DNA of 62,897 bases, filler included, from Lenisia limosa (GCA_001655205.1; 12 parts of 12 records of this genome joined end to end with filler, not necessarily neighbours in it), one strand, 5' to 3'; numbered from the whole stretch's first letter, positions 4,632 to 21,900 are shown. Notes: a model not told the origin generated them from the sequence alone. Made by a program: numbers and translations.

Positions 4632-6521
4632 CCTCAGTCTACACCGTCACAACCGTTTTGCCTGCATTCCTTTAAAAGACAAAAATAAATGCAGCCCTAA
4701 AATTAGGATTATGGTGGTTAAATAATTAGACAAATCCATTTTGCTTTTTGATCGTGAACAGACCTTTGACTTTCTGGCACCTGCAAATGCCAGTTTACTT
4801 GCTTTGAGGCGGTCAGCAAGGTAGGTGATGGCATGCTTCTGTGTCTTGACGGACTTCAGAACCGGGTCAGTGAATGTTGGCATAATATTCTCGGTAAGCT
4901 CCTGGAAATGTCAAACAAATACGAAAAAATTAAAACAAAATTGCGATAATTTAAAAACCTCCCAACAAAAACATCAGAAAAGAAAAAAACTTTAAGGAAT
5001 GGTCCGTAAATTTCTCACCTTAGTTCCTCCAATCATTTCGACAATCTCTTTATCGTGAACCATACCCATAGCCTAGACAATTAGCCCAAGTCAAAAGTAA
5101 CCACAGCATTGTTTGAATGAATATATTCCCAAAAATAATGACAAGCCAACCAACCTTCAAAACAACAACAACGGGGATATCTTCACTGAGGGTGTTGGTT
5201 TTCATGTAAATTCGACCATTCTTCACCACCAAGTTGGTTCGTGACTTTCTCTCGTGTGTTGATCTGAGAGTCAGAAAAGTTACTATACTATATCTTTGAA
5301 GAGGTGATACATAATAACCAAGACTTCTGGAACAACATCGATACAATGCCTTCCCGTTTTTGCCATTAATCGCCACCTACGAAGTAACCGAACAACAGAC
5401 TTGACCCTTGGAGTCGTTTTCGATAATGATACGGTTGTGAGAAAGTTGCTCTTGGATGAGGATCACCTTTTCGGTTCCTCTCACAACAAAATAACCTCCT
5501 AGAAGAAATTACAAAAAATAAGTCAGTATTTCTCAACAGACTTCTCCTGTAAATACCTGTATCAATAGGACATTCTTTGTAGTTGGCCATCTCTCCATCT
5601 GAAGCTCCTGTCAAGATGCAGTGTGATGACCTGCACAAAAATAAGTATGAATGAAGTGCCCAATGGTATACCTGAGCATGATGGGCATTCGACCAATCAC
5701 CACGTCATCTTGTCTGATGATTTGGTTTCCGCTAGAAAGATTAGTCAAGCTGATATACTGAGTAGGGGGAGGGAGTGGGTTCCTGCACCCCTCTACCCCT
5801 CCCCTACACCTATGAAACCACCATTGCATATGCACATATCCCATTTCCTCAAAAAGACCCAGGTACAGTGGGCGAGGGGCAAATTCCACATTGGAACTAC
5901 GCTGTACAAGATCCCTTCCGACAGAAAAAGATAACCTAACACCCTCCCCCAGCCACTCCCAACAAACCGAGTATAAGAAACATCCACAACGATATTAGCT
6001 GAATACGACAAGTCACGAAGACGGCACTGGTGAGGGGTGATCGCACTGGTGATCATGTTTTCTTCGATACTTGGCTTGCAAACACGAATATCATGATACC
6101 TGCAAAGGTAAAAATATTCACTAATTCAAGAAGAAGTCTGGTTAATGATCAGATCAAGGCAAGGAGTGCAATTAGTGAAAGGAAGAACAGCAAGTTCCCC
6201 ACTGTAAGAAGAAGTTTGGGTCTGCGGAACTGAAGATACGGTTGTTTGCAGCGAGAATCTTCTTGAGGTCGACGTTAATGAAGTAATTGAAGCTGTCAAT
6301 GTGCTGTCTCACCAGTCCTCGGACCTTGAGGAAGGCGGGAAGGAGCTTAAGTTTCTCCTAAATATATAAATTTAGGACTCAACCAAACATTACGAGCATC
6401 AGCATACCTCATATGTGGGAATAGCGTCAGTGAGCTTGTCTTTGTTGTATAGGTCTCCGTAGGAAGAATCTTTTTTAGTACCAGCAGCCTTAGAAGGCTT
6501 GCCTGGGTTAAACTTCTTCAT
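4632..6521 (-). CDS. RPC2: RNA polymerase III second-largest subunit, 5' part (truncated by linker)
   Basis: Exons [95 protein letters not shown]; [12 protein letters not shown] and STHERKS are RPC2-type. Confidence 0.95.
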
Positions 6522-6761
6522 CTGAAGCAGACTAATGTGAGAACGACGAGTCACATAAGACCAAAAACCAATATTTCAAACGTAACTCTAAATATATCTT
6601 CACTATTAAGGCTTTGTCTTTGAAACTGCGTCCAAAAAACAACCTTTAAATATTTACAGTGTAGTTAATGTAATGTTGAAAAGCGACAAAGCAAAAAAAC
6701 AAAAAGAAAATGATTTGATGACTGTATTTAATTAACCATCATTTGTATCTTTGTATCCAAT
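6522..6761. promoter_or_regulatory. Putative bidirectional promoter between divergent RPC2 and channel ATGs
   Basis: 240 bp separate ATG 6521 (-) from ATG 6762 (+); no element identified. Confidence 0.45.
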
Positions 6762-9700
6762 ATGGGAAAGCGTAAAAAGGTTGTTCGGTACGAAGACGAC
6801 GTTTTTAACGAAGTCGGTGATCTAGACGATATCGAGCTACAAGAAAGCACCTACACCACCACTGGTCTTGATGATGATGTTGACAAGCAGGGGCTTCTTA
6901 AACTGCAGCAAAGTGGGTTTTGGGGCTTCCTCTGTACCCAACAAATTTCAATTTCAATTCAAGTGTTCTTTCTAATAAGCTCTGTCGTTAAGAATTTTAT
7001 TTGAAAAAATGTTGGTTTAAATCTTTACCATTTGTTTCAAATTTGTATTTTGAAGCATATGCCCTTTGTTTTATCACCTTTCTTTCCCTTTATCAAACAT
7101 TTATTTCGGATAACTCTGTCATTGTTAGCGCAGCTTCGGACTTATTCATCAGAGTCGCAAGAAGACTTCAGTACTCCTCAGCAAATTGCAAGTTACTCCG
7201 CTAATTGGAGCTTTGGGAGAGTAAAAAGTGAGATGCCACTCTAACGAGTTGATCGAGTTTGCCTAAGTGACTTGTATTTTTTTGAAATTGTTCTCATATG
7301 TAGAGCTTCGCCAACATGGAGGTGATTCGTGGGGCGAGAGCTGCGAGGACCTTGGACAATGTGAGCAAAAGATCCATTGTTTAATTTTTTTTCAAAAGGC
7401 TTTGATACTTTGAGATATTACCACTCATATTCACCCAACCCAGTATATGACCTGGTGTGGCAACCAAAAGAGCCTGAGGGCCCCTACCTTGATATGACTG
7501 AAAGAATGCTGCGTGCACAAGCAAGGAAAGAAGCCAGAGGTAAGAAATACTCTGTAAACATTTCTCATATTTTTTTCCTTCGGTTTGGCCCTCTAACTCC
7601 AAAGCCCAAATGTTGGTATCTTGTAGAAAGCCGCTGGACACTCACATCATACATTCGGCCCTCGTCGAAACAAACGTTAGTGTGGAGCACGAAAACCTTG
7701 TACATTTACTTTCTTGGCTATCTCATTTTAACCCTGGCAGAGTACTGGAAGGGATGTCGACGCATTAATCATTGCTGACTCAAGAGAAAATGAGTCATCG
7801 CGCTTGGCATACAACAAAACCAAACAGGTTGCAGTGATACAACATAGCTTGTTGTCAGAGTATATTTCTTGAACTGCTTTTGAGAGTTGAGTCTATTTCT
7901 CTTACTATTATGGTTTTTATTTCATTTCCCTTCAGAAATCTGAGAGAATCCGCGTTTCTGCCAACTATGTAAAAGATGCTTTCACGCGACGATACGCTTC
8001 TGACCGCTCTTGGAGTCTCAAATACTGCGGCATGAGGGGGGTTGTTTTCTGCTTTTTGCCCTTTCCCAGCTCATGTTTTAGGATGTTTGCAGCGAAATCG
8101 ATTTTTTGTTGGACTGGTCTACATATTCATGTTCATCCACTGCTGCCTTGTGGGTGGAGGGTCTTCTCGTTTTATACATTTCTTGTATTAAGCAAGCCGT
8201 TAAACAATGGCTTGTTTTCTTCAGTTTTACGAAGTGACATCATAGACCTTTTTTGAGCCACCGAGTGTCCATGAAGCGGAATCCTGGGTTACTATGGTAG
8301 AAACTGCCTGTATGGCCTTCTACATTCTCGATATATTCAGGGCCATTCTCTTCCTTGGTTTGTTTTTGTTTCAACATTTTTGAATTGATGCATGGCTCTA
8401 TGCTTATACCCCAGGTCCAGGGCAATTTGTGAAAGCTTACACAAAGCTCTACTACCTCCTCATTGTCATTGTGGGTGGATGTTTCTACTATTAAGCGTTA
8501 TAATGTTTTCCTGTTATTTTTTGAACTTGATTCTGGTATTCGTTATTGCTTTTTTTAAAAAAAAATAGTTTTTATTACAGTTTCAGATTGTTCATCTTGA
8601 GATTAATATCTCTAAAATTTTCGAGTTGCCAAATTTACTCTCCCCGCAGGTATTGACCTATGATCTTGGCGTCAATGGTCTGGGCTTGGTTGAGTCTCGG
8701 CCACTTCGAATGTTTCGGCCTTGTCTACTCCTTGTGAGATCCTCAGCACTAAGGTGAGGTTGCCCTTTAAAAGCTGGTAACTCTATTGAATAACTATTCA
8801 GACGATCTGTTGTCAACTTCATAGCGGTGACCTACGCTTGTATTCCCAACCTCCTCATTCTCCTTACTACCACAATGATTTACGGCGCCATAGGCATCCA
8901 GGTATGACGTGAACAGTTCCTGGTAATCATTTCACTTTTCAGCTCTTTGGAGGACAGTACCAATCAGGATCATTTGATAACACGTCTTCGTCCTTACTCT
9001 CATTGCTGGTACTTTTAGCTGGTGGCAACTACCCAAACATTGCGTGGGCTCCTGTAAAAATAATTTATTTTTTTTCATTTTCCCCTCTTCAGTATCATGT
9101 AAAAGAAGAAATTTGTCAGGATTTGACCCCTTGACACCCCAGACTTTCAGCTTGGAATGAGGATCCCCTCTTCATCATCTTCTTCCTGTCCTACATTGTG
9201 ATTGCTGCGTATCTTCTTATAGCCAACATCCTTGCGGTTTGCTCCATTGATAGTAGTCTCTCAAGTTGTGTCTTAGTTTCTTAAGATACTGTGCCTACCC
9301 CTTTGATATGGTGCATGTTACATTATACACTGTTTCATTACAATTTAGGTTGCAATGGACACAGTGTCTCAAATTGAAAAGGTTAGTGGAAGCGTGCAGT
9401 TCTCAAAACCTCTATCTTTTGATGAGATTCTTCTTTTCCTATTTCGATGTTTTGACTTCATTTATTGTCACTATAATGCCACTTTAGCGCCGTGTTGTGA
9501 AGCGTTTTGTTCGCGAACGCCAGGCTCTCTGGAGTGCCTTTGCAGTGCTTGATAGACAGGATACTGGGTATATCAGCGTTGATAGAGTGGGGGGGGGGGG
9601 GNNNNNNNNNNNNNNNNNNNNNNNNNNNNNNNNNNNNNNNNNNNNNNNNNNNNNNNNNNNNNNNNNNNNNNNNNNNNNNNNNNNNNNNNNNNNNNNNNNN

Positions 9701-11735
9701 NNNNNNNTGATAAGGTTTACAGACAAATGATCGCCAATGACAAGTGAGTGGGCACAAGCAATCCTCTTATATCGCATTTCCCTCTATTATGACAATATAG
9801 CGGAATTGAGCGAAGCCTCATGCGCGCTGTAAGGTCCAAGACCCAACTATCGGCTGCTGAATTCTTTGACCTTGTCGATGGACTTCTTTTGAGAGTCCGG
9901 CCTTCCGCCCTCGAGGTAATGTGGGGTAATGATGCACAGCGTATTGTTAACGCTACAACTTGATTCTGCTTGGAGTTCTATTCACCACACAGGAATCGTC
10001 AACATCCTTCAACAATGTCGTATCACAAGGCTCTGAGGCTCTCAGATCGTTTATGACTTCCAAGTAAGTGTGTTTTGGCAGTTATTTCTTCTCCTATGAT
10101 ATACTACTAGTAATACATGGTATATTATGTCACATATGATCCTGATACGATTGACTAAAGATTACACTCTATATATAATGATATATTCTTATTGTTACTT
10201 TGCACTTACCCCCTAGGTTTGTTGCCCTGGTGTGGGGAATTATTCTTATCGCGGACTTTGTTGTTCTTCTCTCCTTTGACGATAATGTTTGAGAGTCAAG
10301 TTACTCAACTGAACCAGTGACTCTTTCTTGGATATCCTTATAACTTCTTTAGTACACAGAAGAGGACTTCAAGAAGCAATACACTATCAACGCTGCCTTG
10401 GTCGCTGCCTCTGTCTTCATTGTCATTCTAAATGTATGCTCTAGTGTAGATGGTTCGTTGTTACTTTTTAGTTGATTGCGTTTGGTCTTCAAGAGTATTT
10501 CACAACAGGCTGGCATCTTTTAGAATTCTTCTCTGTTTTAACATCAGCCATCGCCCAGGTAGGTGAGGTTAGGTTTTCCCCTTTTTTCAAACAATCTTCC
10601 ATGTCATTACAATATTTATCACTTTTTTGGTCACAGCTAGAATGAAATGTAGTATTGGGTTGGCTCACATTGTTAGGCCTATCTCCTCCAAGGTATGAAC
10701 AGACCATTGGGTGCATCATCTTGGGGTGATAACAACGAAACAAGGGGTGTCTATGCCCTCACAGCTACAAGGTGTGTAGGACTTCTTTACAATGTGTCTT
10801 GCACTGGGAAGTGTTACTGTTTCTTAAAGCTGCTAACAATGACAATAATAGATTATTCCGAGTTGTTGCTGTTAACAGAAGTACACGCCGAATGGCATCG
10901 TCTCTTTTCACTGCGCTAAAGTCCGTGCTCCCGTTAGTGATGGTGAGTAGTGCCTTCTCTCTTGCTGGTCAGGCTGTTCCCTGCCTCCTCTAAATAAACC
11001 CTCCAACAGGTGATTTTAGTCTTCATCTACTCTGCTGCCCTTGGAGGCATGGAACTCTTTCATGGTGAGCGCTGAACCGATAAGAATGTTCTTCTTGAAG
11101 ACCTGTGTGCAAGCACTGACCCTTAGAACATTCCGCTCAAGCAGGCCCGGCCTGGGATGGTGGTGCCAACCTGTCCGACGCTGACGCCAAATTAGGCTCT
11201 TTTGAGACCTTTGCCAGGGCCCTTCTGAGTGTCTCTACGGTTTTGTCGCAAGGACGCTGGCATGCTGTTGGGAGGGGGTGATTACATCCGATTTGATATT
11301 GTTTGTTAACAACCTCCAGACAATGTTTGGTCAAATGGAAGCCTCCGATAACGGTTTCATTGCGTTCTACTGGGTTGGTCTCTACACAATTCTTGGTAGG
11401 CTGAGACTTCCCATTTTTTTACTCATTTTTGGGAAGAGTTTTGAAAGACTCCTTTAATAATTCGCTTACAGCTCTACTATTCGCCAATGTTGTTGTTGCC
11501 GCACTTCTACGAGCTTTCAGTCTCTTAAGAGACCTCAGAAGGGCCGAGTCTGACGTTTTCATGAACACCCTTACAAGAAAGGTGGGTGGGTTGCTGCTTC
11601 CGACTGTGGCTTGGCTTTGGTGTTTTTTCTGATACCCCCGTTTACAGTTCCTCATCTTCTCTCTAGAAAACAGGGGGACTCTTCAGCGATGACACTGATG
11701 ACCTTGCACATGACGTTGATGCGCTCCGAGATATG
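6762..11735 (+). CDS. TPC: Two-pore channel (2x6TM, EF-hand linker); N-terminal module of a probable fusion gene ending at 15811
   Basis: ~29 exons: SANYVKDAFTRR, TFFEPP, IS4 SRPLRMFRP, pore I LLVLLAGGNYPNI, EF-hand-like AFAVLDRQDTGYIS, IIS4 ATRLFRVV, pore II SFETFARALLSVSTVLSQGRW, IIS6 LLFANVVVAALLRAF. Confidence 0.85.
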
Positions 11736-11871
11736 GTGGGGGTCTTGAGGGGAAACAGATACCCTGCTATCACCTTTTCGAACCAAACATATCATCATAT
11801 ATGATGGTGTTTTATCATTTGAGCTTTTTTCTTGTTGTTAAAACTGGTGTTTTGTGAGTTTCACGTTTCAG

Positions 11872-14800
11872 CAAGAGCTTCAGATCCGAAACAGAAGAAA
11901 ATTCCGTCTGAAGCACTCAGTGTATTCCTCGCAACTTTCAGGAATCATTCGTCAGTTTTGTCGGTTATTATTTCATGCTGCTCTCTGTTTTTGTTATTGT
12001 AACCATCCCAGAACTTCAGGCCATTATTCGAGGCTTCCTGGGAAGAGTGGAATTCAAAGAAGTATTGAGAGAACAGTTTGTGGATTATTTGTAACTTTAT
12101 TGCCATTCACAATCTTGACTTCCTTTAGTTCGGCAACCGTGATTCAACGAGCTTGGCACTCCTACAAAACGCGCGAGTGGTTTATCAAGGTAAAAATAAG
12201 CCTTCCACTCAGTCTTCATTGTTTTTATTGTTGTTACCTTTACTTCAATATGCCTTCCTCAACCTTTCAGATGATGCGGTCAGTGAGAATCGCCCAGAGA
12301 GTAACGCGAGGCTTTATTGAAAGGAGGCGTTTCAAAAAGTTCAGGAAAATGGTGGGTGTTCTCAACCATTGTGTGTTTATTTGTTTCATAAATTTTCCAA
12401 TTTTACCCCCCCACCACCACCACCAGGCATGGCATCGCGCCAAAGTCGTAGAAGAAATCCTGTCTTCTGAACGTGTGTACTGCAACCAACTTGCTGCTAT
12501 TCGTGATGTCTTCTACGGGCCCATGCTTGATGATAACCTCATTGATGAAAAAGGTTGGTTCCGAAGAGTTCCGTAATATGTTTTCCAGTAGCTCATCGCT
12601 AATCGCGTCATTTTTGGTCCGGTTTGGGTCAAATATACTGTAATTGGGGCGTCTCTGTACGATGACGGGTTGTACCAGGGGTATATTCCTGAAATCCGCG
12701 AATTTGAAAGGACAAGAAATGTATTTATCTAAAAACAATTTCGATATTATGGAAAAAACTTGCATCGGGAAATTAAATGGGGGTATCGCTTTCGGCTACG
12801 GTCATACTCTGGGGGCCATCGCGCATCCCGTCCGCTCTGCGAACGCAAGCCCCAGCAGGCCTTGGTAGTACTGACGNNNNNNNNNNNNNNNNNNNNNNNN
12901 NNNNNNNNNNNNNNNNNNNNNNNNNNNNNNNNNNNNNNNNNNNNNNNNNNNNNNNNNNNNNNNNNNNNNNNNNNNNNNNNNNNNNNNNNNNNNNNNNNNN
13001 TAACATTTCGGAGATCTCTTCCCTTTCCTCTCAACTGCTCAACAAGCTTGTGGACAGAATCGAATCCAACACCTATACCAACGCTCATAGTGTCATTAGT
13101 GAGTTCCCAAGGGACAAGGGGTTTTTTGGTCGCCGTTCTCTCTTTGTTACATACATATTCTTCATTAGGCTTTGTTTTTACCGAAACAGGTGACATTTTT
13201 GAAGAAATCGCACCCTCCCTTGAAGCCTACACCTCTTATGTCAACAATTACAACAATAGCCTCATGACATTGGCCGACCTGCGTGCACGACCAGATGTGG
13301 AAGAAGTTAAGGGGGGGGGGGGGTTNNNNNNNNNNNNNNNNNNNNNNNNNNNNNNNNNNNNNNNNNNNNNNNNNNNNNNNNNNNNNNNNNNNNNNNNNNN
13401 NNNNNNNNNNNNNNNNNNNNNNNNNNNNNNNNNNNNNNNNNNNNNNNNNNNNNNNNTGCCCAAACCATTGTTTACCCCTTTTAGTTTGTCCTTAAAGCCG
13501 AATCGGACAGCGCTGCTCTCGGCTTGGGCCTCTCGGATCTCTTGATCACACCTGTCCAGGTTTGTCACTGTAACCAGACTGTATAGCTCTCCATCTTTGC
13601 TCTGATACGGATATTATTTGTTCTATTGCACAAGAGAGTGTATACCACCTCACCTTCCAGAGATGCCCCCGCTACATTATGCTTCTCAGTGATCTCATGA
13701 AGGTTTGTACGAGATTTAGAAATTCGCTCTAAACCTTCACTCCCAACAGAACTCATGGCCGGAACACCCCGACAGACAAGGCCTAAGTGTGGCTGTGGCA
13801 GCCGTTCAGACCCTCACTACCTACATTAACACACAAAAGGTGGATAATTGCACATTCTGATCTTCTTAAGCTTGGCTGAACCCAAATTATTATTATTCAG
13901 GCTGATTCTGAGAATGTGCTCCGCGTAATGAACATTATTGAGTCGTATAAGAATCCTCCTCCAGAAGCAGTGAGTGGTTTGTCTCATATTTTATTAGTAC
14001 ACTATCAAGTATTCTCCTCATTACATTCCATACCTCAGTTTACTCTCTGTAGTCGAGAAATCGGTCCACCCGTCGTGTTGTTGTGGAGGCCGACTGTCTT
14101 TTCGTAAGATGGGTTACGCTTCTCATTTCTTCCCGTTCATTCTCCCTATCTAATGCTGAGTTCATGGTACAAATATACTTTGTATATTATATTGTGTATG
14201 ATATAGTATATCATATCATATTATATTGTGTATGATATAGTATATCATATGATATTCTATACTAGAAAGTATAGTATATTCCATACCGTTTACTCCCCCC
14301 CTTAGGGCAAAGTTGGCGATACGAGCACCAAGAGACGGCATATTGTGGTCTTCAATGACGCTGTCGTCATCGGTGAAAGGCAGAAAAGCATGTTCGGGTG
14401 GGGTGGGGGTGACACAGCTCTTCTAGCTGTTTTGCTTGCTTCTATGGATTGTGTCGACAGATCATGTTTTCTTACATCTGCAGCTCCAAGGTGTCTATGA
14501 AGATGCTGAAGTGGTACGACATTCGAAGCTGTCAGGCGGTATCGTCCTTCAAACGAGTGAAGGGTGAAGGTGGGAAGCTGGTTTGTCTTCTGTGAAAAAA
14601 CCTGTTTTTTTTTTTGTTTTTTTTTTCTATTATAGATACTCACGCTTTAGAAATGGACCATCCTGTTGGCTTGGTCACGCCGGAGTCTAAAGTGGAAGGC
14701 ACCGCGTCTCATGTGATCTATCTCAGCAGTGGTATGACAATCGAAGAACCTGCTGTTGAATCAGACAGACATATATATATTTATCTTTTAATCCCTCCCC

Positions 14801-15811
14801 TCCCCCAGCCATTGACACTAATGAGTGGTATGATAGTGTTCCGCGCGCAGTTGCGTCAGCGCTCAGTGGAACGGAATTCAAGGCCCCTACACGACAGAAA
14901 ATTGAAAAAGTGAGATGTGTCTTCAATATCAACTGTCTACTTTGTTTATTTTCCCGTTGTTATCATTTTAGATGGTGGCCATGTACAACTTCAACGCACC
15001 CATGTCTGATGAGCTCCCTTTCAAAGTGAGAGTCCTATTGAGATAAATAGCGCTATTTACTACTTTACACCTTTCAGGAAGGAGATGTGATTGCGATCAC
15101 CGACCGAAGTTGTGGTGTACAAGGCTACGTTAAAGGACAGGTGAGGGTATATATATACTAATATGCGCTATTTGGGGGTATGTAGTCAGGACATAATTCA
15201 AATGTATGTATGGCAATGGGGGTATGTCCCTATTTCTGGGAGCAAAATGTATATTGCAATTTTATCTTCTTTTTTTTTTACCCTTGTTTTTTAAAAAAAG
15301 TGACAAAAATTACCGGAAATATAATTGGTGAACCTCTTAAGATTATTGATGGTCAGATTCACCTGTTTTTTTTTTCATTTTTTTTTTTTTGAACAATTTG
15401 AAGTAAAAGCACACAATTGTCTTTTGGAAAATTTTATAATTATATACTACATGTAATATGTATATATCATATATTTCATTTGTATATCTGGCATTGTATA
15501 TTATATGTAATGTATACATATATGATGGGGTATGGGGGGTATTATGTCTGAAACCAAAAACCAAAAAAAAAACTACATATCTCGATATATATATATCATA
15601 TATATAGTATATTTGACGTTGACCCTGAGTTACTGGGCCCTTATAGAACAAGAGTCTGGAGCACATCATTTGGGCTGTAAAAAAACAGGATAATTCTCAC
15701 TGACTTCTTCAGCTAAATGGTCGAATGGGGATATTCCCTGAGAGGTACGTTTCCAGCATCCGAAACATCAATGCCTCTAAATCCATGTATCGACGGACTG
15801 TTCAAAGGTAG
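11872..15811 (+). CDS. IQ motifs + RhoGEF (DH) + PH + SH3 module; no own start codon, probably C-terminus of the TPC gene
   Basis: IQ: IIQLQAIIRGFLGR, TVIQRAWHSY, IAQRVTRGFIER; DH: RAKVVEEILSSERVY, GDIFEEIAPSLEAYTSYVNNY, LSDLLITPVQRCPRYIMLLSDL; PH: RHIVVFNDAVVI; SH3: VAMYNFNAPMSDELPFKEGDVI...LNGRMGIFPERYV; TAG at 15809-15811. Confidence 0.9.
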
Positions 15812-15992: not shown

Positions 15993-18900
15993 CTAAATAA
16001 GAGTCATGCAGTTGTCCGAAGTAACCATTGACTCATAACCAAATTCCGACGACCCAACAACCTCCGTTTCCATTGACTCATGCTATGGGGTTAGTGAAGA
16101 CAGGTTTTTGAGAGCAAGAGGCAGCAGTCCTCTTCAACCAACCTGTGGTGACTCCAAACCAGTATCAAAGTCAGATGAAATTTCCAAAACACTACTGCTG
16201 CTATTACTTCCTAAAACCATAAATTCGGATGATAATTCTAATTGTGGCCGGTCACCTAACCAGATGATAAGTCGCTTTTAGCTTCTTGGAAGTCGACTTT
16301 GGAATGAATGTTACGTTCAGAAGCGGTTATCTCTAAAACATTAGTTGAAACATTCGCGCTCCTAAAACAGGCATCTCACCTTGGTAGACGGCCAACACAC
16401 ACAGGAAGAACGTGGATATGAAGACGAGCAGAACAAGAATAACCATGATGGTGAGCTCTGTAATAGTGAAAACATTGGGTAAGAGAGATGCCTCTCACCG
16501 AATCCCTCAGGCTGTGAATGGAGGAAGAGGTAACTGATCGCCAGGCTGAACTAAAAGACATGACCAATTTCCTCAATATCTTTTTACAGGGAATCAAAGC
16601 TTGAGTCTTCAAGAGCCCATTCCAACCAAAGAGCTCAGGCATGTTGCATTCTCAAGGCGGTTTACGGCCGAGGAGATATATGGGGTGTTTTCAGCCTGGA
16701 CTACGAGACTTGCCATTAACACCAAAAGAGCAAGGAATATCTGGCAGGAGGAGGGGGGAGGGGGTCAACGGCAATGGCAATAAGAGTATGAATAAACACG
16801 GCTTAGGTAGAGACTGTGAGAATATCATCCATATTTTGTGCATACCTGAATGTTAGGGTTGGCTGAGAAAACACGGACAGCCACGGCCATGCAAAGAGAC
16901 CGACAGAAGAGGATCAGCTCCCATAGATAGAACTGAGGCCGGAACCTCAGGTACATAGGACCAAGCCTGATTAAATGAGACTTTCGTGCATATGATGTCA
17001 GACTAAATTCAGATAAGGGGGGTCTTGTTTAGGTTTGTCAACTAGTGTGCAGTCGATGAAGAATTTCCAGGAGGGGGTCATAAAATTAAGCGAAAAACAA
17101 CAACAAAAACAACAAAAAAAACCAATATCCCCCCCCCCCCCNNNNNNNNNNNNNNNNNNNNNNNNNNNNNNNNNNNNNNNNNNNNNNNNNNNNNNNNNNN
17201 NNNNNNNNNNNNNNNNNNNNNNNNNNNNNNNNNNNNNNNNNNNNNNNNNNNNNNNNNNNNNNNNNNNNNNNNNNNNNNNNNNNNNNNNNNNNNNNNAAGA
17301 GGATGATGCCAACAACCCCAGGTACTCCAACAACGAAAACCACCACACACAGCACGGCCTTCCACATTTCTGCCATGTGCGTTCCTTCAAAACACGTGAT
17401 CGAGGGCTCTGCGGAGATAAATATGTTGCTTTTAAAGGATCGGATAAGTGCTTTTTTTAAGACAGCTTCATGGTCCGAAGGTAGATATTTGTTTGATATT
17501 TTTCCACAATTTGTTAAAAATGCTACTTTATGACCAAAGCGAAGTCCTACTTATCACTAGGGCTTCACCGGTAAAATATCGATAGTTTTCGAGGATATCT
17601 TTTTTCGAACCGAAGTGAAGCCCTATCAATGAAGAATTCCATCGAACCTTTACGTAGGCGCCAGTGGCCGTCAGAGTCGTAAGTGCAGTCGAAGTACGTC
17701 ATAGTTGCCATTGTGACTGGGAAATATGTCACTGACAACACCAGAAGAACAGTGCGTGTGAAGGTTATTCTGGAGGGTGTAAAAAGGACAATGGGTTTTG
17801 GGGATGATTAACTACAGAAAAAAAATGTATTAGAGAGATTGAACATTATTATACATCGTACCCACTTGGCCATTTGCGCATCAAAGGTGATTTGCGTGAC
17901 AAGATAGATAAGCGTCAAGATGAGTAGAACAATCGGGATTATGGTCATTTGCAACAGGTAAGTTGACATGAAGTCTACTTTTCCTATCCTGGGAGGGGGG
18001 GGGGGNNNNNNNNNNNNNNNNNNNNNNNNNNNNNNNNNNNNNNNNNNNNNNNNNNNNNNNNNNNNNNNNNNNNNNNNNNNNNNNNNNNNNNNNNNNNNNN
18101 NNNNNNNNNNNNNNNNNNNNNNNNNNNNNNNNNNNNNNNNNNNNNNNNNNNNNNNAGAAAGTAGGGAGGGGGGCAAAAAAAACCAAGACTAGCGTCTGAT
18201 AGTTTGATATTGATTAAACACTGTTAAAAAATAGAAATATAATTATATATTTATCTGTATATAATATATGATATGTATTATATGATATGAAGTATATACT
18301 ATCACATAAAGAGCTTTTGAGAGACCCAAAAGGATTTGTACTTCGCAATTAGAGAAGAAACACCCCCCCCCCCCCAACTGGCATTCCGGTTGTNNNNNNN
18401 NNNNNNNNNNNNNNNNNNNNNNNNNNNNNNNNNNNNNNNNNNNNNNNNNNNNNNNNNNNNNNNNNNNNNNNNNNNNNNNNNNNNNNNNNNNNNNNNNNNN
18501 NNNNNNNNNNNNNNNNNNNNNAGGGAGTGTAAGAATATCCGGCAAACGTTGTATAAAGTGGCCAGGGTAGCAGGCCATCTTATGTCAAATTGTCCGTAGA
18601 GACTCGTCACCTGTTGAGTAAAACAAGAATATGGGGGGGGGGTGGGTTACCTTCTTTGGTACTTATAGCGAGACAACACAATCTCAGAGTTGAACAAAGA
18701 AATTAACTACACAGAAGATTCGGTCCCTTTCCCCATACCTGAATAAACTGTATAGCCACCCGAGTAGCTGCAAGCCGTGACGAGCTCTCTTCAGCGTCCC
18801 AATTGGCAGCAAAGATGATGACAGTGATAAGGAAGAGGGCAGCACCGCAGAGGGGAAGAAGAAGGGGCGACAGTCGCTCACATGGCTGTGGGTGCATCAG

Positions 18901-21900
18901 AGAAGGAAATGCTTCATATTATATCGTATAGTGTAAATAATATGGATAAAATACAAAGCAGTGGATGCAGCAAGTCATAATCGGTCCCAAAGCCCCTCCC
19001 TCTCACCAAACACTCCTCGGCTCTTTTATAGTAGTTGTCCTCACATTGGCCACAAAGAAATCCCGTATAACCGTCAGCACATTTGGAGGCTCCAAGACAC
19101 CCCGTACTACAGAATAAGCTTCACTGATCTAATGGGCTGAGCTCAACAAGGCAATTCCCATCCATCAACCTGCTGGATGGACACTCCACAAATATCGCTT
19201 CGTTACTAGCGTAGAAACCCGGCATGGCTTCGGGTTGGGCCATTCCTCCGGCACACACCGCTCCCTACACATCGTTATTTAATGCCATCCATTAATAAAA
19301 AGCAGTGCTTCATTAACAGCACCTTGGGAACGGCGAGGGTTGTGTTAAACAAACTTAGCAACACAAGTTCTTCCACCCACATTTGGGCACTCCAAGCACT
19401 TCACCTGATCACTGACTTCGGAACTATAACGGTCAATGCCGATCAAAAAAAAAAAAAAAGAAAACTGGTCATAAAAAAAAAAATANNNNNNNNNNNNNNN
19501 NNNNNNNNNNNNNNNNNNNNNNNNNNNNNNNNNNNNNNNNNNNNNNNNNNNNNACCCTCCTCTGCCCACTCTTGGAACCAGCCCGGATTACAAGAGCAAT
19601 GCTCATCGGTCTTCGCACCCACAACGTCAGACGCGGAGTTATCGGGACACAGGGTGCAGCGCGGGCCTATGCTATAAGAACTTGTTTAAGGAATTGCTGG
19701 ATACAAAAAGAGATGAGAAATAAAAACTGGTCGTATCGCGGGATAGGCAGAGCAATACAAATGGAATTGATCCGACCATCGTTAAAGCCTCGGAAGGAGC
19801 CAGGAGGGCACGGCTGGCACTTCGAGTTCGGATCCAAATAGGAGCCCGCAATGCATTGACAGCTGGACTCACTGGATAGTTAAACTGGAATTGAAATTGA
19901 AAATGTGTCAAAATCTCATAGTATATCGATGTACATATATATACATGTATACCATCACTGACACCATCCCCTCCCCCCTACGCATCACCAAGGCGTTGAG
20001 AATAAACGGGGCAAATGCAGTCATTTACAGAGAGGGATGCGGTAGTAGCTGTAGTGGCACGGTCACCGAGGCATTCGGTACATGCCTAATAAGGTAATAT
20101 GGAACAAACATAGTGGAAATCACAACATATAGTATACTAATATATATATATAGTATATCATATATTTATATATTTTGTTCAAGACTTATCCCGGTTACTG
20201 TATATTATACTAAACGAGTGCGAAGTATGGTAATCATCCAATAAAATCTTTTATGACCCTCTCAGAAAGCCTACTGTGTTACCATTGGTCGTCTTGTAGA
20301 ACCCCTTTTGGCATGGCAGACAGGCTCCAAAAGCTCCGGGTTCAAAACCTGACTTACACTCGCATCCCTCAACGCCAACTACTTGGTCCACCTGGCAGAG
20401 TACACACTTCTTGTTGAGCATGAAGCCCTCCCTAAAGAATGAAACAAAAAGAGATTAAAAAATAAGGTTAATATCATTGTCAATAAGCTTTCAAAACAGA
20501 ATTCAGAACGTTTGAATTTAAATAACCTAGAACATGACATATATCATACTTAATATCATATGATATGTTTGTTGAGAAAAGTTATGAGTCCCACTCACAA
20601 GCATTGGCAACGGACAGGGTCAGCGGTTGAATTGCTGCCTTCAGGACAAACACATTCGTCAACTGTGATACTCCCGATACTACATAATAAAACTGAGAAA
20701 AGAGATGCACTGGTCAAAAATCCCCTATTCCCTCTTGTATTGTGAGGAAATGCCTTCTGATAGGCTTGAAAATGAAAAAAAACCTCCATGTACGTGAGAG
20801 TAGTCAGATCACCCAGGCACTCGGTACAGGTGCCTCTCGAGGCTACGGGTGCGTAAAATGAGAGACCACAGGGGCTGCAGATGTTGGTGTCTGGGTCGAG
20901 TTCAAAGCCTACACCGTGATATGCTGATAAGTAGGTTTTACACATTAAGAATTCAATGTTTTCTGTATCAATAGAAGAGATATAGATTTTCACTTTGTCT
21001 GGGATGGAAGTAACGCGAATCTCCAGGTTACCCTTAACGCATTGGCAGCTTGCAAGGTCCAAGCCTTCGGAGGATGTTGAGTTGACGGGACAGTTCTGAC
21101 AGACCTGCCCAGTATACTCAGTATTGGCAGGACATGTGCATTCAGAGGGTTCTNNNNNNNNNNNNNNNNNNNNNNNNNNNNNNNNNNNNNNNNNNNNNNN
21201 NNNNNNNNNNNNNNNNNNNTTGATGCTTGGCATAAACAGGGTTTTATTTTTTAGAGAAAGTCGCAATACGATTGAGAATTGAATGTCCATACCTCCTTTG
21301 CTATTGAAAACGAGTTTGAAAGTATCAGCACAGACACAATCATCTAGAAAGATCACGACGAGGCACAGAAGTTTGAAGTCATAAAAAGCAGAAAACAAAA
21401 AGAGAAAGCTGACCGAAACTTGAAGATCCCGAAGGAGCAGAAGCGTAAGAGTAGCCACAGGAAGAACAGTACTACAACATCAGAAAAAAATGGTGTTACT
21501 CTGACGACTTACCCCAGAGCCTTTCTCGTGTTTATTGCTCCATCCAATTCACAAAGTGAGCCCATACACGGCAGAACAAGACATCAACCCTCCCCATATT
21601 AACCCATCTTCACTTCCTCCCTCCCACTGATTGCCCCCAGTCCTCTTCATCCGCAAAGGTCTGGTTCTTAAAGGAGTCACGAGGACAATTGGTGCACTCT
21701 CTAGAGCTGACGTCCATGAACTGTCCGAGGCCACATGCGCACCGATCTCCTACAGCAAAGGAACCTGGGGGGGGGGGAGTAAAATTGGAAAATTTATGAA
21801 ACAAAAAGAGCCCAAATAAACTCTGTTGGCTGACAATACAGAAAGGTTGATAACAACAAAACATACAAAGCCCAGGCCAGTCGCTTTNNNNNNNNNNNNN

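Follow-up and report, generated by a model that had tools for sequence, protein, structure and literature searches.

The gene described here lies between positions 6762 and 15811, on the plus strand, of a 62,897-nucleotide (nt) stretch of DNA from Lenisia limosa (GCA_001655205.1), hereafter the window; all coordinates are positions in the whole window. For this locus the original prediction had proposed a two-pore channel (TPC) joined in frame to a guanine nucleotide exchange factor (GEF) module consisting of IQ motifs, a RhoGEF (DH) domain, a PH domain and an SH3 domain. Spliced polyA RNA contigs support a single in-frame mRNA encoding a TPC-type channel followed by three IQ motifs, DH, PH and SH3. 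We consider it probable that the locus is one nuclear gene, with about 48 exons and a product of about 1351 amino acids (aa), for a TPC-family channel whose cytosolic C-terminal tail runs into the IQ-DH-PH-SH3 module, and that it works along the lines proposed below. Its features are as follows.

6762-7833, plus strand: predicted 5' coding exons 6762-6912, 7153-7227, 7304-7360, 7444-7539, 7605-7675 and 7741-7833 (splice and codon model only)
7936-9381, plus strand: TPC repeat I, pre-S1 to S6; inferred exons 7936-8040, 8093-8149 (S1), 8246-8357 (S2), 8421-8470, 8650-8753 (S3/S4), 8802-8901 (S5), 8943-9043 (pore, ..AGGNYPNI), 9143-9236 (S6) and 9349-9381 (GT..AG sites and frame, colinear PDB matches)
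9488-10063, plus strand: inter-repeat linker with two EF-hand-like segments that look degenerate; exons 9488-9587 (plus 13 nt of RNA replacing gap 9602-9707), 9708-9743, 9801-9915 and 9993-10063 (RNA joints 9587>9708 and 9743/9801)
10217-11735, plus strand: TPC repeat II, S1-S6, pore ..VLSQGRW.., with a short C-terminal tail to DVDALRDM; exons 10217-10286, 10353-10433, 10472-10558, 10677-10771, 10852-10943, 11011-11064, 11127-11266, 11320-11395, 11472-11581 and 11667-11735 (RNA joints)
11736-11871, plus strand: junction intron, 136 nt, GT..AG, removed in a 732-nt RNA contig
11872-12351, plus strand: IQ region; exons 11872-11950, 12012-12075, 12129-12189 and 12271-12351 (RNA joints)
12012-12075, plus strand: exon carrying IQ1, LQAIIRGFLGRVEF, a full fit to the consensus
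12129-12189, plus strand: exon carrying IQ2, IQRAWHSYKTREWF
12271-12351, plus strand: exon carrying IQ3, AQRVTRGFIERRRF
12427-13969, plus strand: DH (RhoGEF) domain; exons 12427-12553, 19 nt inside gap 12877-13000 continued by 13001-13098, 13190-13305, 13485-13559, 13661-13702, 13750-13839 and 13901-13969 (RNA joints, Pfam, PDB)
14053-14909, plus strand: PH-like domain; exons 14053-14103, 14306-14397, 14484-14569, 14651-14731 and 14809-14909 (RNA joints)
14972-15811, plus strand: SH3 domain and C-terminus; exons 14972-15025, 15078-15140 and 15713-15811, stop TAG at 15809-15811

RNA evidence across the fusion junction

RNA evidence was taken from a polyA RNA run (X1) and DNA evidence from a DNA-like run (X2), which belong to one study and were made on different samples (S1 and S2). 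The last channel exon ends ...DVDALRDM at 11735, ahead of the donor GTGGGG, and the next exon begins at 11872, behind the acceptor TTTCAG, with QELQIRNRRKF.... A 732-nt X1 contig, which has a depth of 6 and extends over 11126-12352, shows splicing at the predicted fusion junction, 11735/11872, and also at six neighbouring GT..AG sites (11266/11320, 11395/11472, 11581/11667, 11950/12012, 12075/12129 and 12189/12271). The spliced contig reads as a single frame, ...FYWVGLYTIL...DVDALRDM/QELQIRNRRKF...IQLQAIIRGFLGR...ATVIQRAWHSY...SVRIAQRVTRGF..., and the proposed in-frame join is thereby borne out. RNA depth over the junction intron is about nil in X1, and a search of its 136 nt for AATAAA and ATTAAA found neither hexamer. 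Two further statements of the original prediction, that only 136 nt separate the two parts and that no in-frame ATG precedes the first IQ motif of the GEF part, are likewise correct: no such codon occurs between the stop at 11839-11841 and that motif, and the first DH exon lacks a separate start codon.

Downstream of the junction, thirteen more GT..AG joints in X1 contigs bring the frame to the TAG at 15809-15811, and a 148-nt loose RNA end after 15140 matches the sequence from 15713 on. The spliced contigs thus agree with the predicted course through IQLQAIIRGFLGR, two more IQ motifs, DH, PH and SH3 to the stop at 15811. Together, the RNA contigs and joints give one open frame from 9488 to this stop in 33 exons, with most joints directly in RNA; those at 9915/9993, 10558/10677, 10943/11011 and 11064/11127 were set from loose RNA letters, GT..AG sites and frame. 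These data show the structure of the gene from 9488 on, its in-frame splice and its expression as polyA RNA.

The weakest RNA link is 12351/12427, where 12-13 RNA letters are followed by adapter; the letters equal the predicted exon start exactly. The intron at 12352-12426 contains a CCA/C-rich low-complexity stretch that is common to many other places in the sample. X2 word depth reaches about 52,000 at 12352-12426 and about 4,000 at 12782-12876, compared with about 36 elsewhere, and X2 contigs break there; those breaking in intron 12352-12426 overlap by 20 nt only. An 8-kb X2 contig spans 9708-12405.

Three assembly gaps fall within the gene. At gap 9602-9707 the RNA runs from 9587 through 13 nt to 9708 with the frame kept; the G-run at 9588-9601 is missing from the RNA, so that 14 letters and 106 N stand for 13 nt. 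At gap 12877-13000 it runs from 12553 through 19 nt to 13001, again in frame, which places the beginning of the exon inside the gap, and the sequence across it (...DEKEAENLFSNISE...) aligns gaplessly with the intersectin DH domain. Gap 13326-13456 falls inside intron 13306-13484. Runs of G or C stand directly at N-gap edges at 9588-9601, at 13311-13325 and elsewhere (e.g. 17130-17141 and 17996-18005), and the remaining ones probably arose through the same kind of artefact, of sequencing or scaffolding, as that at 9588-9601.

Gene model and domain content

The draft gene model has 48 exons encoding 1351 aa, and its 47 introns in a 4.06-kb coding sequence (mean exon length about 84 nt) amount to an extreme intron density. 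Known introns range in length between 38 and 572 nt (median about 77 nt), and all 29 that could be scored are GT..AG. Exons 5' of 9488 were predicted with a splice and codon dynamic programme trained on RNA-supported exons and were then corrected by reading the DNA. A 6-nt micro-exon (9093-9098) and an exon at 8082-8107 in the first model were replaced by the joint 9043/9143 and the S1 exon 8093-8149; the gapless TPC1 and colinear TPC3 alignments described below confirm the corrected repeat I exons. Ten percent of the sampled words of 6700-9500 occur in X1, and part of that region is therefore transcribed. The ATG at 6762 is the first after an in-frame stop, and the exons from there to 7833 would encode an N-terminal extension of about 180 aa without homology. 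The piece of DNA examined is eukaryotic, with about 40% G+C and many short stop-free segments on the plus strand; Rfam and tRNA scans of it gave no matches.

For the channel half, PDB was searched with domain-sized spliced pieces of 128-155 aa, single exons being too short for channel searches: single exons or unspliced stretches returned nothing, or chance matches to leucine-rich and designed repeats, and Pfam gave no match on five transmembrane (TM) exons of 30-46 aa each. The S4-S6 piece of repeat I has its best PDB match in mouse TPC1 (6c96, residues 231-329, E 2.6e-10, 99 aa without gaps), in an alignment that includes ...LLAGGNYPNIALSAW... against ...LLTTANFPDVMMPSY...; TPC2, TPC3 and plant TPC1 match as well, and the best single Cav repeat reaches 21.5 bits where TPC1 has 43.7. 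The sole PDB match of the piece from pre-S1 to S4 is zebrafish TPC3 (6v1q, residues 36-177, E 4.5e-5), which validates the predicted exons 7936-8753. In repeat II, the S4-S6 piece is about equally close to Cav repeat II (E 5e-5) and to residues 541-665 of Arabidopsis TPC1 (E 5e-4), and 89 of the 100 nearest named clusters in an Atlas feature search with this region are Ion_trans. Hydropathy and landmark mapping place S1-S6 twice, with no third repeat in the continuous open reading frame (ORF), and the 12 TM segments, the two pore helices and the S4 arginines are all intact. Judged by these alignments, the channel half belongs in all likelihood to the TPC family, as had been predicted, with repeat I closest to TPC1 and TPC3 and repeat II no closer to TPCs than to Cav. 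At 8413-8421 there are tandem acceptors, CAGGTCCAG, 6 nt apart and both in frame, which would give either ...LFLGPGQFVK... or ...LFLGQFVK....

The linker between the repeats offers little for the suggested parallel to EF-hand gating in plants. Pfam EF-hand_6 scores 17.7 bits on 9488-9586, under the cut-off of 25, and a Pfam EF-hand search on 9802-9915 found nothing. In loop 1 (DRQDTGYISVDR), Q occupies position 3 and R position 12; acidic ligands are missing from loop 2, and both loops are without the canonical Ca2+-coordinating residues. A plant-TPC1-like alignment of the linker was considered and found unsupported, PDB returning only weak matches to EF-hand proteins with no TPC1 among them. 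On these residues the EF-hand-like linker looks degenerate, and the IQ motifs are the more likely candidates for the Ca2+ input.

IQ pattern matches lie at residues 864, 889 and 912, with a spacing of about 24 residues; the consensus used, [FILV]Qxxx[RK]Gxxx[RK]xx[FILVWY], is fitted fully by IQ1. On the unspliced stretch the Pfam IQ model gives 18.6 bits, under its cut-off of 20.3. The three tandem motifs are candidate calmodulin-binding sites. The DH domain is clear: its best PDB match is the intersectin-1 DH (E 4.2e-14 over 151 aa, nearly gapless), and 55 DH structures match at E<=1e-3. Its other best matches are ECT2L and FGD6, not RasGRF, and ARHGEF16 matches at E 1.5e-4; the Pfam RhoGEF model is matched in two pieces, with 19.9 and 21.5 bits. 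In the intersectin-1 alignment the domain keeps the CR1 Glu (SERVY/TEENY) and the CR3 QR..RY (PVQRCPRY/PMQRVTRY). A PH-like domain sits in the canonical place directly after DH, and a clear SH3 domain follows (Pfam SH3_9 46.3 bits with a cut-off of 30, SH3_2 39.5, SH3_1 39.1). No REM or Cdc25 RasGEF domain comes after IQ-DH-PH, and the ORF closes with SH3 and the stop at 15811. The domain calls of the original prediction hold up, among them DH and SH3 clearly and PH weakly, and these matches show the family identity of the domains, for PH at a sub-threshold score. The SH3 domain is split by the longest intron of the gene, 15141-15712 (572 nt); within the gene, G+C falls to its minimum (28%) in the bin 15132-15631, and there is a repeat at 15362-15394.

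Relatives and comparison with known systems

A protein library was searched with the 244-aa stop-free stretch 11842-12573, of which 115 aa are coding and comprise IQ2, IQ3 and the DH start. The single match, at 35 bits, was P0001, an IQ and DH ORF at positions 557-1084 of a 1.8-kb metagenome contig (L001); a close orthologue of the IQ2-IQ3-DH-start segment is therefore absent from that library, and so is the organism's own protein. P0001 has IQ directly ahead of DH, in the same order as the fusion gene, and no channel sequence is present in the 556 nt upstream of it on the contig. Between its IQ motif and its DH start lie about 20 odd residues (SCETFPAFRTFLVFLTYHG). These look like the in-frame read-through of an intron at the site of the window intron 12352-12426; if so, the position of the intron between IQ and DH would be common to both genes.

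A metagenome scan with the junction-spanning piece found no relative. A metagenome scan with a DH alignment gave 80 loci at 30-44% identity, and tblastn of the channel half at these loci gave 0 matches, though several have 5-10 kb upstream. Long ORFs at the DH loci carry PH, FYVE, ENTH, RanBP zinc-finger or ARM partners instead. A homologue search with the repeat I piece, within the length range of the word-indexed search, found nothing, and in the literature searched no TPC-RhoGEF or other channel-GEF fusion is described. A survey of Dbl-like GEFs in 175 genomes mentions IQ partners and no channel or transmembrane partner (PMC5499878), and protist TPCs are little known according to a TPC paper (PMC8490419). 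These searches, made with segments of the protein rather than its full length, showed no TPC-RhoGEF architecture, and we regard the gene as a new combination of known domains, a novelty that they neither refute nor prove.

The channel resembles TPC1, TPC2, TPC3 and plant TPC1 in having two tandem 6-TM repeats on one chain. Repeat I is gapless with mouse TPC1 from S5 to S6, including N-[FY]-P-[DN]-[VI] after the filter, and resembles TPC3 from pre-S1 to S4, while repeat II resembles Arabidopsis TPC1. Plant TPC1 also shares the EF-hand-like remnants in the inter-repeat linker, whose loops here, however, look unable to bind Ca2+. The gene differs from TPCs in its filter residues, its long predicted N-terminus, a repeat II equally near Cav repeat II and a C-terminal extension of about 515 aa (three IQ, DH, PH and SH3) that is not known from any described TPC. 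An IQ motif directly behind the last S6 of a voltage-gated-type cation channel is also the arrangement in the C-tail of Cav and Nav channels, in which resident calmodulin on the IQ motif senses Ca2+ coming through the pore. Unlike these, which have one IQ, the tail here has three in tandem and an enzyme domain after them, and no EF-hand-like pre-IQ segment was detected in it.

Among GEFs, RasGRF1/2 (PH-CC-IQ-DH-PH-REM-Cdc25) likewise have IQ just ahead of DH-PH and are activated by Ca2+/calmodulin, which is a precedent for such control of a Dbl-type GEF. The present protein lacks their REM, Cdc25 and N-terminal PH domains and has a channel as its N-terminal partner. The order of DH, PH and C-terminal SH3 is that of the ephexin/ARHGEF16 group and Trio GEF1, where SH3 has a part in autoinhibition; SH3 likewise autoinhibits DH in the GEFs Asef and collybistin and in those of ephexin type. 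The present DH domain has a closer match in intersectin-1 (E 4e-14) than in ARHGEF16. Cation channels covalently bound to a signalling enzyme, with flux and enzyme output in one place, are known as chanzymes and include the TRPM6/7 kinase, the TRPM2 NUDT9-H and the K+-channel-adenylyl cyclase of Paramecium and Plasmodium. The pair here differs from them in joining a TPC to a Rho-family exchange factor, for which the literature searched holds no example.

Proposed mechanism and alternatives

In the mechanism that we propose, the channel would anchor the GEF at its own membrane, which, by analogy with other TPCs, is probably endolysosomal, vacuolar or phagosomal. Ca2+ released by the channel or nearby would load calmodulin on the IQ helix behind the pore, and the loaded calmodulin would either lift or bring about inhibition of the neighbouring DH-PH; SH3 might contribute by autoinhibition or by binding a partner. 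Local activation of a Rho-family GTPase, and hence of actin, would follow at sites of channel firing. A feedback of the IQ-calmodulin unit on the gating of the channel, known from Cav and Nav, is also possible. The strict form of this proposal, a true channel-GEF in which TPC ion flux, read by calmodulin on the three IQ motifs, directly switches the attached Rho-family exchange factor, is tentative, and we hold it to be possible though on balance doubtful.

Several points weigh against the reading of the locus as such a fusion protein. IQ2 and IQ3 are off consensus (HS for RG, and A at position 1), and Pfam PH reaches 18.2 bits (E 0.0036, profile positions 14-100 of 105), under its cut-off of 25.1. 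In the SH3 domain GYVKG stands where GWWKG is usual, replacing what we take to be the first ligand-binding Trp. Repeat II does not separate TPC from Cav (26.8 bits for Cav1.2 repeat II, 23.6 for AtTPC1); exons 6762-7833 are predicted by the model only, and the repeat I exons are inferred, though homology validates the latter. All RNA evidence stems from a single run of low depth (4-14), which leaves room for minor channel-only or GEF-only isoforms. The library and metagenome searches produced no relative of the same architecture, and conservation therefore lends function no support.

Three other accounts of the locus were weighed. A chimeric RNA contig or a mis-joined genome is hardly credible as the source of the fusion. 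Such an error would find openings in the gapped assembly with G-runs at gap edges, in the DNA contigs that meet by a 20-nt overlap within the low-complexity intron 12352-12426, and in the few RNA letters ahead of adapter that link IQ3 to the first DH exon; yet the joint falls exactly at canonical GT..AG sites with the frame kept, and a chimera would require a shared 30-mer, of which none exists. RNA and DNA came from different samples, the 8-kb DNA contig carries the region across the junction, the 12 RNA letters after 12351 equal the predicted start of the next exon, and P0001 also has IQ directly ahead of DH. Two neighbouring genes, a TPC and an IQ-RhoGEF, that yield an occasional read-through or conjoined transcript and are normally made as separate proteins would be compatible with a single low-depth RNA run in which contig depth varies from 4 to 14.3, and retention of the junction intron would end the channel 22 codons on, at the stop 11802-11804. 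We nevertheless rate this as quite improbable, since 136 nt leave no room for a 3' untranslated region, a promoter and a first exon, IQ1 is not preceded by any in-frame ATG of the GEF part, and the intron has neither RNA coverage nor a polyA hexamer. The step up in depth lies in mid-DH, at about 13273, away from the junction, and fits 3' bias.

The fusion might also be real with one half vestigial, for example a non-conducting channel kept as a membrane anchor or a DH domain that serves as a pseudo-GEF scaffold. The filter residues are not those of characterised TPCs (AGGNYPNI in pore I, where the TPC1 alignment shows TANFPDV, and SQGRW in pore II), the EF-like loops are degenerate, PH is sub-threshold, the SH3 Trp is replaced, and no orthologue is at hand to show purifying selection. 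Set against this, the 12 TM segments, pore helices and S4 arginines are intact, the frame is open across 48 exons, DH keeps the CR1 Glu and the CR3 QR..RY, and the gene is expressed, and we regard a vestigial half as unlikely. The preferred reading remains one gene for a TPC-family channel with an IQ-DH-PH-SH3 tail. It may be a lineage-specific curiosity: it is known from one organism, RNA depth is low, the searches showed no conserved relatives, and DH domains are freely shuffled among protist proteins.

The processes under TPC control include endolysosomal trafficking, phagocytosis, macropinocytosis and cell migration; each of these needs local actin remodelling by Rho GTPases, and we know of no direct molecular link established between the two. 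A natural fusion of both activities is classic 'Rosetta-stone' evidence for a functional partnership; if the proposal is true, this one would predict cooperation of separate TPCs and IQ-type RhoGEFs in other eukaryotes, and would be the first known hard-wired link from an organellar cation channel to Rho/actin signalling. It yields a model in which Ca2+/calmodulin on a channel tail gates a GEF, and would extend the few known channel-enzyme fusions by a new class of enzyme.

Two further genes were noted beside the fusion gene, both on the minus strand. Exons of the second-largest subunit of DNA-directed RNA polymerase lie at about 5050-6357 (RNA_pol_Rpb2_1, 39.7 and 25.4 bits), with profile position 1 near 6315; this gene is divergent from the channel gene, and about 400 nt separate the two starts. 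At about 18900-21500 there is a gene with repeated Cys-rich modules (Ephrin_rec_like, TNFR/ELAPOR-like and DUF7630, the last at 28.2 bits), which is interrupted by several assembly gaps.

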